A DNA stretch of 64,000 nucleotides. Source: Macrostomum lignano (Eukaryota). Below are positions 13,801 through 16,800 of this stretch, piece by piece. A model generated the notes under the pieces. That model was not told the DNA's origin. It saw only the letters and a program-made list of their open reading frames with translations, and did no database searches. Position 1 is the stretch's first letter. The number at the start of each line of letters is the position of its first letter. A program made the position numbers and the translations under genes. The stretch is taken from contig NIVC01000181.1 in NCBI GenBank assembly GCA_002269645.1, positions 275,693 through 339,692 on the forward strand, given 5' to 3'.

Positions 13801-16800
13801 CTTCACTCTTAGTCGGGCTCTGGGATGGAGAGTGACTTTACTCTAAGTGTGGCTCTGGGATGGGAGTGACTTCACTCTGAGTGTGGCTCTGAGATGGAGA
13901 GTGACTTCACTCTGAGTGCGGCTCTGAGATCAGGAGTGATTTCACTCTGAGTCTGGCTCTGAGATGGAGAGTGACTTCACTTTGAGTCTGACTCTGGGAT
14001 GGAGAGTGACTTCACTCTGAGTGTGGCTCTGAGATGGGAGTGACTTCACTCTGAGTGTGGTGCTTAGATTGATGTGTGACTTCACTCATGGACAATTACA
14101 TCAGGAAATTAATTGGCCCACAGAGAAAGTGACATCATTGGTTCGTGGCTGAGGTCTTTAGAACTGACTTTTTCTTCCCAATTCTTCCCAGTGTTTTGTG
14201 AGGTAAAATCCCAACCCGAAATTGATTGATTTGCACCGCAACATTCGAGCTCAGCTCAATTTCCCAGAAAAATTTTCGAACCTCCCGTTTTTCGAGTTGT
14301 GCGCAGCCCAGGTGAGAAAATCTGAAATTTCAGAGGACCCGGCCCGCCCCCACCCCCGCCAAAACAGGGGAAATTACTGTGGATCGAGACTCGAGCACGC
14401 GACTGACTTTGGGGATTTTGGGCAGATGAGGAGCGGGAGAACAGCAGAATAAGTCATGGGGATCGATTGCAGCTGGTTGCGCCAGCAAAAATATCCCCAA
14501 AATTCGGGGATCCGGAGGAGCCCGTGCGGAATGGGGTTTCGGAACCAATGCGATAATTGGCGCCGTGCGGGCGGGCTCGATTTCACGGGGGGGGGGGCTT
14601 GAGTCGGGCTGGGGATCAGGGCCTTGAGAAGGGAACAATGTCGTGCTCGGGAAACGGTTTTCTAATCCTCAGCAATGAGGAGAAAACGGTTAATTCCTCA
14701 TAAATTATGTTTGCACTCAGGTGATTTGTTCCTACAGCTCATTTTGACTGTCATGCAATCGGGCTTGTTCACTCGAGCATTAGGGAGAAATTTTACCTAC
14801 ATGCATTCTTTTATCAGTAGCCATGCACTAATGAAAAAGTACACCTTGCATGTGTATCATAGTACAACTGCATCAAAACATAGGTAACTACGCCTGCCAT
14901 CAGGCATGAGTACTTATGTACTCTTACAGAAGTGCACCTGTACTCTTACAGAAGTGCACCTGTACTCTTACAGTAGTACACCTGTACTCTTACAGTAGTA
15001 CACCTGTACTCTTACAGTAGTACACCTGTACTCTTACAGTAGTACACCTGTACTCTTACAGTAGTACACCTGTACTCTTACAGTAGTACACCTGTACTCT
15101 TACAGTAGTACACCTGTACTCTTACAGTAGTACACCTGTACTCTTACAGTAGTACACCTGTACTCTTACAGTAGTACACCTGTACTCTTACAGTAGTACA
15201 CCTGTACTCTTACAGTAGTACACCTGTACTCTTACAGTAGTACACCTGTACTCTTACAGTAGTACACCTGTACTCTTACAGAAGTACACCTGTACTCTTA
15301 GAGACGTACAATAATAAATCATGCAAAAGTACTTACCGTACTCCAATGCAACGTTATCCTGAGCGAAAGCATCCGCCAGAGGATTTCTAATGCCTTGGCC
15401 ATTGTTGACAAACTGCGGCTGCACTTCAACCATCGGCTGAGCCAGTGGGAGCGGCTGCGGCACTGGCGGCGGCGGCGGCGGCACAAAGGCAAACTGTGAA
15501 GCAGATGGAATGAGGTGAGTTTAAGCGCTCAGGAGAGGGTATTAGCGGCGCAAGCACAAAGACTTCAAAACTATGACTTCACAGTCAACCCCGATGCAGC
15601 TATGCAACCAACCCTAGGTATAAAAGCTGTGGTATACTGTGCTATTTGCACATTTATTGCCTTCGACCCGGGATCAACATTAGGGAATTTGGTGCCTAAC
15701 TTTGAATGGACGAACCCTTCCTAAGTCCTTGCACGCTGGTCCTATATCTAAAGTCTCAGAATTCGATTTGAAATTCAGCCCTACTATGAGCAGCTTAAAG
15801 GGGCTCAATGTTGATGGCAAGTTAAATGAAATGCATGCCGGTCTTTCTTAGGGGATTTTGATAGTAATAGTCTTATCAGGCGGCTAAATATTCCATTCCC
15901 AAGTCAGAAACCTACGATAAGTTTATACTTCAGAAATTTCCGCCGCAGAGTCTTAGCTCAGATTTTCTAAGAAACATTTCGATACATATCGGTTATTGAA
16001 TAGTCCACTTCCAAAGAAGCATATCTGTCATATTGCTAGAGTTCACCCTTGCTAAAAAACATTTCGATACATATCGGCCAGAACTGAGAACTGCAAACTC
16101 ACCGGAGGCGGCAGGCGTCTCCATGCGGCCTGAGCACCGGTGAACGGGGAGCTCGTCGTGAGGAGGCCGCCTGCGGATGCCGCGGAGGCGGCGAAGACGG
16201 GCGCTGAGGCGGCGGGGGTGGCGCAGGAGATGCCGAAGGCGTCGGAGGCGGCGCGGGAGACGCTGAAGGCGGCGGTGGCGGCGGCGGAGGCGGGGCTGGC
16301 GATGCAGCCGCAGTCGCAGCCGCTGTCCTCCCGGCTGGCGCGGTGCCGATCGTCCACCGACTCGCCGAGGATGCGGCTGATGCCGAACTTCAGCTGCGAG
16401 GCGTCGGTGGCGGCGCCCGCCTGCTGCCTTTGGCGCTGCGGCGCCGGCAGTTGCTGCGGGGTGGCGCCGAGCCGCCAGGAGCCGCTCAGGTCGACTGGCG
16501 AGTCGCGGTCGCTGCCCGTGGCGATGGCGGAGTCGCCGCTGAGGCCACCGCCTCGCGCTGCCAGCAGGACAGTCGAGTGGCCGGCCGAGCGGAGAATCTC
16601 GTGCGAGATCTCATGGGAGATCTCACGGGAGATCTCTTCCGGTGTGCTGGCACGGGAGCCTGAGAACGGAGAGTTGGGTGAGGGAGGTGTGATAAGTGAG
16701 GCAGACGGGGGCAGAGGGTCAGAGGAGGGGCAGGAGAGGGTGACAGAGAGGGTGATAGAGAGAGTGACTGAAAGAGTGACAGAGAGGGTGATAGATAGGG

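Follow-up and report, generated by a model that had tools for sequence, protein, structure and literature searches.

Two ovo genes in an inverted duplication

The DNA analysed here, called the window throughout, is a 64,000-nt stretch of Macrostomum lignano contig NIVC01000181.1 (positions 275,693 to 339,692), and all coordinates refer to it. Comparison of the window halves by BLAST identified an inverted duplication with arms of 11.2 kb (A) and 11.4 kb (B), enclosing a spacer of 16.8 kb. Each arm carries one intact five-exon gene of the ovo/OVOL type directed outwards. The genes stand head to head; the minus strand carries copy A (16937–10838) and the plus strand copy B (44168–50237). The arms were delimited by the outer and inner limits of collinear inverted homology, as follows.

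10834–22060, minus strand: arm A, with ovo copy A
38862–50241, plus strand: arm B, with ovo copy B
22061–38861, no strand: unique spacer, 16.8 kb, without inverted homology except satellites

Both open reading frames (ORFs) were complete, and all eight introns had GT-AG ends. Copies A and B encode products of 381 and 396 amino acids, respectively, which are 90% identical. Exon 2 of copy A was placed by splice sites and reading frame. The first exons were predicted from sequence alone, as an in-frame ATG with a consensus donor and a fitting phase.

16922–16937, minus strand: A exon 1 (predicted); ATG GAG ACT CAC ACA G, then GTAAGT, giving METHT; in-frame ATG, consensus donor, phase 1 matching exon 2
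16103–16659, minus strand: A exon 2, with the FGISRIL motif; similar to M. lignano protein P0002
15337–15493, minus strand: A exon 3, 157 nt
12977–13156, minus strand: A exon 4, zinc fingers 1–2
10838–11073, minus strand: A exon 5, zinc fingers 3–4; stop codon TAA at 10840–10838
44168–44195, plus strand: B exon 1 (predicted); MSNCVDSQN, donor G then GTAAGT, phase 1
44544–45100, plus strand: B exon 2
45729–45918, plus strand: B exon 3, 190 nt
47734–47913, plus strand: B exon 4
50002–50237, plus strand: B exon 5; stop codon TGA

Exons 4 and 5 encode four C2H2 fingers clustered at the C-terminus. The Pfam families zf-H2C2_2 (E = 3.8e-15), zf-C2H2 and zf-C2H2_4 each scored over their cut-offs. A protein search returned 1032 matches at E ≤ 1e-10; the top two were from M. 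lignano, and many were called ovo, Ovo-like or lin-48. The motifs LKFGISxILG and FVNNGxGIRNPL are common to the window products and other flatworm OVO proteins. The SNAG repressor motif (MPRxFLVK) had no match in the six frames of the whole window. This motif is N-terminal in vertebrate OVOL and is not universal among invertebrate OVO proteins, so its absence does not exclude membership. Judged by these sequence features, both genes belong to the OVO/OVOL C2H2 zinc-finger transcription factors.

Exon 2 of both copies encodes an FxIxxIL motif (FGISRIL; A 16394–16358, B 44809–44845) that fits the engrailed-homology-1 (eh1, Groucho-binding) repressor pattern. M. lignano OVO proteins conserve the motif, and so do those from a monogenean and from a schistosomatid.

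Homology between the arms is confined to three tracts

BLAST, together with MAFFT identity profiles of the arms in gene orientation, placed all collinear homology in three inverted tracts, T1, T2 and T3. The tracts formed plateaus at 94–100% identity in the MAFFT profile, while the sequence between them gave 40–55%, the level of unrelated DNA. In each arm 6.4 kb of ~11.3 kb could be aligned, and ~5 kb of the tract sequence is intron or upstream non-coding DNA.

20668–22060, no strand: T1 in arm A, non-coding; partner 38862–40248, 98.4% identity over 1393 nt
38862–40248, no strand: T1 in arm B, by BLAST
15964–16821, minus strand: T2 in arm A, running from the 3′ portion of intron 1 through exon 2 and 139 nt into intron 2; partner 44383–45239
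44383–45239, plus strand: T2 in arm B, by BLAST and alignment
10834–14969, minus strand: T3 in arm A; most of intron 3, exon 4, intron 4, exon 5 and 5 nt beyond the stop codon; partner 46024–50241
46024–50241, plus strand: T3 in arm B, by BLAST and MAFFT

The interiors of the tracts, including intron 4, most of intron 3 and T1, were 0.7–2.2% diverged (97.8–99.3% identical), and differed from one another within that range (chi-squared p = 0.019). The lowest value was that of T1, which differs between arms by 18 mismatches and 3 small indels. T2 was 97% identical over 858 nt (25 mismatches, 1 indel), with a 12-bp CT minisatellite in its intron 1 part. T3 contains a 35-bp array in intron 3 and a 23-bp array in intron 4, and its overall identity was ~94% with these internal minisatellites counted. 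Together the tracts held 113 substitutions, as well as indels, between the arms. High identity reaches neutral sites, namely the introns, synonymous sites and upstream DNA of the tracts. As ~5 kb of the shared sequence is non-coding, constraint on the protein cannot explain the identity.

An initial annotation of this locus had described a mosaic of near-identical and strongly diverged blocks, and the BLAST comparison, the MAFFT profile and the synonymous-site test below bear this out. Its inverted tracts are real, although it had run the largest through 14917–15300, a 22-bp minisatellite, whereas the unique alignment ends at 14969/46024. Its list also lacked T1. 'Near-identical' describes the interiors fairly, but identity is not ~100%, and is lower again over T3 as a whole.

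T1 lies 3.8–4.1 kb upstream of exon 1, with non-homologous DNA on either side. Neither Rfam nor a tRNA search gave a match for it, nor did Pfam for its longest ORF, and an RNA gene or a protein gene was rejected on these grounds. A conserved upstream element was likewise rejected, since T1 did not match the upstream DNA of M. lignano in a search with words as short as 7. T1 might act as a regulatory module common to both genes, or be a non-coding exon upstream of them.

Copy-specific segments and exon 3

The segment interrupting the genes between T2 and T3 comprises the following blocks.

14970–15963, minus strand: divergent block A; distal intron 2 (15963–15494), exon 3 (15493–15337) and the start of intron 3 with a 22-bp array (15300–14917)
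45240–46023, plus strand: divergent block B; distal intron 2 (45240–45728), exon 3 (45729–45918) and the first 105 nt of intron 3

Distal intron 2 (470 nt in A, 489 nt in B) had no detectable similarity between copies (Smith-Waterman z = 0.5 against shuffles), while intron 2 as a whole is nearly equal in length (609 and 628 nt). The earlier statement that intron 2 is unalignable thus holds for this distal part; the first 139 nt lie within T2. The two exon 3 sequences remained recognisably related (z = 16.8 against shuffles), and the lengths and peptides first given for them were confirmed. Exon 1 and the promoter region were also unalignable, and the ~4 kb between T1 and T2 was non-homologous, each arm having different minisatellites. 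At the 3′ end identity stopped 5 nt beyond the TAA stop codon of A and the TGA of B, and the following 1 kb was unalignable (z = −0.6), in agreement with the annotated end of identity close to the stop codon. The copies thus have the zinc fingers and the exon-2 FGISRIL motif in common, with exon 1, exon 3 and the 3′ flank copy-specific, the division that the initial annotation had drawn between shared DNA-binding and repressor parts and the rest. Transposon insertion was rejected as a source of the copy-specific segments, none of which has a second copy within the window; the test was made at window level.

Exon 3 is followed in both copies by members of one 22-bp repeat family. In A this is a minisatellite of 17.5 copies at 14917–15300, as called by Tandem Repeats Finder (TRF), and in B there are ~2 copies. 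B 45944–45965 is a degenerate copy of the unit, with an 18/22 match reached by 0 of 500 shuffles. The family begins 25–36 nt after exon 3 in both copies, which indicates that the two exons are positional homologues.

The first 29 nt of exon 3 (15493–15465 and 45729–45757) differ at one base, although beyond them the exon has reached synonymous saturation. A conversion micro-tract or a constraint related to splicing may account for this.

Synonymous divergence and base composition follow the tracts

Synonymous divergence (dS) was calculated by the Nei-Gojobori method, using for exon 3 a core of 26 unambiguously aligned codons. The exon-3 core had 12.5 synonymous differences in 17.3 sites, whereas exons 2, 4 and 5 together had 8 in 246.7 (Fisher p = 3.6e-12). 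The sequences of exon 4 were identical (dS = 0), exon 5 gave dS = 0.018, and exon 2 had 7 synonymous differences per 150 sites. For exon 3, dS was 0.89 overall, and the proportion of synonymous differences (pS) was 0.72 in the core. An identity profile and dS per exon had been set as checks on the initial reading; by both, divergence is far from uniform along the arms.

Base composition divided along the same lines. Shared non-coding DNA, satellites excluded, was 50.1% GC, compared with 42.0% in 13 copy-specific segments. GC content at third codon positions (GC3) was 0.88–0.95 in the shared exons and 0.50–0.73 in exon 3; the orthologous finger exons of M. lignano gave 0.77–0.81.

Mismatches between AT and GC alleles were unevenly distributed. 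In T2 (16124–16813), B carried the GC allele at 15 of 20 sites, whereas in the unique intron 3 part of T3 (14088–14956) it was A that carried it, at 14 of 17 sites. The asymmetry is thus opposite in the two places, and is unpolarised, being a comparison of A with B only.

The arms might instead be a product of assembly, either through haplotypes or homeologues misjoined in inverted orientation, or through true paralogs homogenised by polishing with multi-mapping reads. The sequence is very rich in repeats: tandem arrays (TRF, score ≥150) make up ~18.7 kb of the 64-kb window, or ~29%, single arrays reaching 2.5 kb. Tract edges fall at such arrays, the weakest spots for assemblers and polishers, and the assemblies of relatives are redundant (PMC5730564). 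However, the window contains no runs of N, and the arms flank 16.8 kb of unique spacer with a real gene. The 113 substitutions and the indels within the tracts indicate that the arms do not repeat a single consensus. The two genes are both intact; their exons 1 and 3 are different yet well formed, and their stop codons also differ. Neither unalignable introns nor synonymous saturation is expected of haplotypes. We therefore consider an artefact very improbable.

Tract edges are sharp and often lie at repeats

All six tract edges were sharp, identity falling from ≥97% to random within a few bases. Four of the six lie at repeats: the intron 1 12-bp array, a 21-mer unit, the 22-bp array and the degenerate 22-bp unit by exon 3 of B. 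The 21-mer, CCGATATGTATCGAAATGTTT, had been reported at a tract boundary. It occurs exactly four times, two per arm and 85 bp apart (chance expectation zero), and the second copy stops 8 nt short of the T2 edge.

15972–16077, minus strand: CCGATATGTATCGAAATGTTT pair in intron 2 of A, at 16077–16057 and 15992–15972
45126–45146 and 45211–45231: partner pair in B

No additional copy was found allowing 2 mismatches, and an extra 21-mer copy as mediator of a deletion was rejected.

Divergence rose towards the edges. The 70 nt adjoining them were 6.4% diverged, compared with 1.3% in the interiors (p = 8e-10). When only the three clean edges were counted, those outside arrays and not ragged, the value was 3.3% (p = 0.027).

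A mosaic with such edges might also arise by loss. On this view the ancestral gene would have had a choice of two first exons and a tandem pair of mutually exclusive exon-3 units. It would have been duplicated in inverted orientation recently (~1–2% divergence), each copy then losing one alternative through complementary, repeat-mediated deletion. The tract edges would then be deletion junctions, and the shared blocks would date the duplication. Sharp edges, most of them at repeats, fit this, as do island interiors that all fall within 0.7–2.2%, and the model asks for no more than a single deletion in each copy at two places. At 157 and 190 nt, the two exon-3 units both have a length of 1 mod 3; a transcript with the two together would be out of frame, as is the case for mutually exclusive exons. 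Against this, the window copies showed no remnant of the other exon-3 type by BLAST, each having one unit, and both M. lignano ovo loci have a single exon-3-like unit, although as distant relatives they provide a weak test. Loss would predict neither the higher divergence at the edges, nor the differences among the islands, nor a GC content 8 points higher in shared non-coding DNA. It would place the outer breakpoint 5 nt past the stop codon by chance, and leaves the near-equal lengths of intron 2 as a coincidence. Complementary loss is thus unlikely.

Comparison with other M. lignano ovo genes

The zinc-finger exons of the window were 84–89% identical in nucleotide sequence to the M. lignano ovo loci, with dS = 0.69. 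Over exons 4 and 5, dS was 0.012 between A and B, and 0.69 to M. lignano P0002. In a 42-nt core of exon 3, by contrast with the fingers, A and B had 10 differences, and either copy had 9–13 from either M. lignano paralog. Resting on 14–26 codons and a distant relative, this comparison would place the split between A and B far back in time at exon 3 and very recently at the fingers.

The two M. lignano ovo loci (L001 and L002), searched with 10 kb of flank on each side, contained no inverted repeat of ≥300 bp and no second ovo copy, and had no synteny to the window beyond the ovo exons. The predicted exon 1 of B (MSNCVDSQN, 44168–44195) is weakly like the short phase-1 exon 1 of P0001 (MSQCSSPNS..., L002 10001–10046). 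P0002 is without such a first intron, and the likeness between B and P0001 spans too few residues to judge.

A further explanation is that the duplication is recent, and that one copy acquired its divergent segments (the region of exon 1, intron 2 through exon 3, and the 3′ untranslated region, UTR) by ectopic conversion from a third ovo copy, itself diverged and located elsewhere in the genome, for example a homeologue. There are at least two deep ovo paralog types in relatives, P0001 and P0002, the conserved exon-3 cores of A and B are as far apart as deep paralogs, and the start of B (MSNC...) has its weak counterpart in P0001 (MSQC...), also a short phase-1 exon. The M. lignano assembly also contains much duplicated sequence (PMC5730564). 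Such a history would, however, take at least three separate imports covering exactly the unconstrained parts and stopping at the stop codon, and would leave the ~4 kb of non-homology between T1 and T2 unexplained. There is no third ovo copy within the window, and neither exon 3 is clearly nearer to one M. lignano paralog. Import from a third copy seems to us a slim prospect; both it and assembly error are less likely still than complementary loss.

Surrounding sequence

The spacer contains a multi-exon gene (25952–32913, minus strand), in which the ORF at 32359–32913 matches Pfam CLASP_N (E = 2.5e-15). The CLASP_N exon had 0 homologues at E ≤ 1e-5 in a collection of 5.8 billion proteins. A 47-bp tandem array at 29309–30950 (34.9 copies, 97% matches) covers the geometric centre of the palindrome, position 30461, within the region of this gene; this may be coincidence. 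Just outside arm A, on the plus strand, an ORF at 7846–8715 encodes a long Ser-rich region followed by RRM_1 (E = 5e-13), and resembles an exon of an RNPS1-type splicing factor.

Long arrays in the window include those at 18587–20489, 58835–61320 and 57412–58508. Related CT-rich satellites lie at 9928–10164, 17515–17950, 18587–20491 and 35500–36420, and the 28-bp repeat unit of 31681–31833 is seen again at 56655–57190.

Conversion between the arms as the probable source of the mosaic

We favour an old inverted duplication followed by recurrent GC-biased gene conversion between the arms, with a probability of roughly 0.6. The ovo/OVOL-type gene would have been duplicated in inverted orientation, head to head, around a unique spacer, long enough ago for unconstrained DNA to diverge past recognition. 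Non-allelic conversion between the arms would repeatedly overwrite the three remaining islands of homology, T1, T2 and T3, holding them at ~1–2% divergence while they gain GC. Such exchange may be tolerated because a crossover between inverted repeats would merely flip the spacer. Conversion would stop where homology is lost, and as it would be unable to enter non-homologous segments, the island limits would be sharp. These limits would fall where heterology starts: at minisatellites of unequal copy number, at the 21-mer repeat, and where the constrained coding sequence ends. The parts outside the islands, namely the first exon with its promoter region, distal intron 2, Pro-rich exon 3 and the 3′ UTR, would be left to evolve independently. 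The outcome would be two proteins with the same fingers and FxIxxIL motif, and a different N-terminus and exon-3 linker.

We infer the age of the duplication, conversion and its recurrence as the source of the islands, and the role of the repeats as barriers. The rise in divergence at the edges, the GC excess of shared non-coding DNA and the high GC3 of the shared exons point to conversion that is recurrent and GC-biased. An end of identity 5 nt past the stop codon would be an improbable coincidence for a random duplication breakpoint, and fits conversion, as constrained coding sequence would be the last anchor of homology there. The initial annotation had likewise proposed an old duplication with recent, patchy conversion. 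The mosaic and the identity of non-coding DNA agree with it; interiors at 0.7–2.2% suggest that the conversion was not very recent.

Several observations weigh against conversion. The phylogenetic evidence on concerted evolution consists of an outgroup comparison over 14–26 codons, made with a single sequence of the locus. The island interiors are broadly similar in divergence, and a single age, from the duplication or one complex event, might apply to all of them. Sharp edges at repeats would also fit repeat-mediated deletion junctions. T1 is non-coding and has non-homology on both sides, so an ancient duplication would need conversion to have been kept up there over a mere 1.4 kb. One short island segment, the first 139 nt of intron 2, is not GC-rich and is the sole exception to the base-composition pattern. 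The difference in GC3 that separates exon 3 from exons 4–5 is partly seen in the M. lignano gene as well. The arms are also known from assembled sequence alone.

A further, doubtful suggestion is that the mosaic is upheld by selection and is not a passive leftover of conversion. The paralogs would then act like isoforms, differing in promoters, first exons, Pro-rich linkers and 3′ UTRs, while the fingers, the FxIxxIL (eh1-like) motif and T1 might co-evolve through conversion. The minisatellites might serve as insulators that keep conversion from erasing the paralog-specific parts. If this were true, tandem repeats would set the modular limits of concerted evolution within a gene.

Comparison with known systems

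Inverted duplicates that exchange sequence by non-allelic gene conversion have been described before, and what is proposed here is not a new type of element. In mammalian sex-chromosome palindromes the arms differ by <0.1–1%, with arm-to-arm identity >99% (X) or 99.9% (Y) over the whole arm, and recurrent GC-biased conversion has been documented (PMC3723533, PMC8981503). The ovo arms resemble these palindromes in their inverted orientation around a unique spacer, in the putative homogenisation of introns and intergenic DNA besides exons, in the raised GC of the putatively converted DNA and in tracts of several kilobases. Unlike the arms of X and Y palindromes, which are tens to hundreds of kb long, the ovo arms are 11 kb. 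They share only three islands (6.4 of ~11.3 kb, at 97.8–99.3%), the remainder being without homology, and thus fall short of >99% identity over the whole arm. Nothing in the window points to a sex chromosome, and M. lignano is a simultaneous hermaphrodite (PMC5730564). The analogy is one of mechanism only. The likeness to sex-chromosome palindromes first noted for this locus thus extends to the proposed mechanism and to inverted arms around a spacer, but the arms have not been homogenised as wholes.

The human globin genes HBG1 and HBG2 provide a second parallel. In work by Slightom et al. in 1980, their conversion tract reportedly ends at a (TG)n run in intron 2, and this simple repeat is said to have been put forward as a recombination hotspot or limit. 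As at HBG1/HBG2, where the near-identical block lies 5′ of the more diverged one, a near-identical block including intron sequence lies beside a more diverged block in the ovo genes, with the switch at an intronic simple repeat. The globin copies, however, are in tandem, their diverged part is still alignable and there is one boundary, whereas the ovo copies are inverted and have six edges.

In Drosophila, isoforms of ovo/shavenbaby arise from alternative promoters and first exons on a common zinc-finger domain. The flatworm genes similarly give products with the same C-terminal four-finger domain and different predicted N-termini. Where Drosophila has one gene with several isoforms, the flatworm logic is spread over two paralogs, in which the predicted exon 1 and exon 3 differ.

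A literature search for Macrostomum returned nothing on ovo paralogs or on gene conversion. The principle has been known since the globin and Y-palindrome work, and the present case is a flatworm example of it and no new concept; it is well resolved and unsurprising to a specialist. It carries a warning for dating, as the zinc-finger exons give dS ~0.01 and exon 3 gives saturation for the same duplication. If the conversion reading is true, the locus would be a compact, 11-kb case of modular concerted evolution inside one gene. The DNA-binding and candidate repressor modules and an upstream block would be kept near-identical, the N-terminus, linker exon, promoter region and UTR would be free to diverge, and repeats would mark every internal limit.

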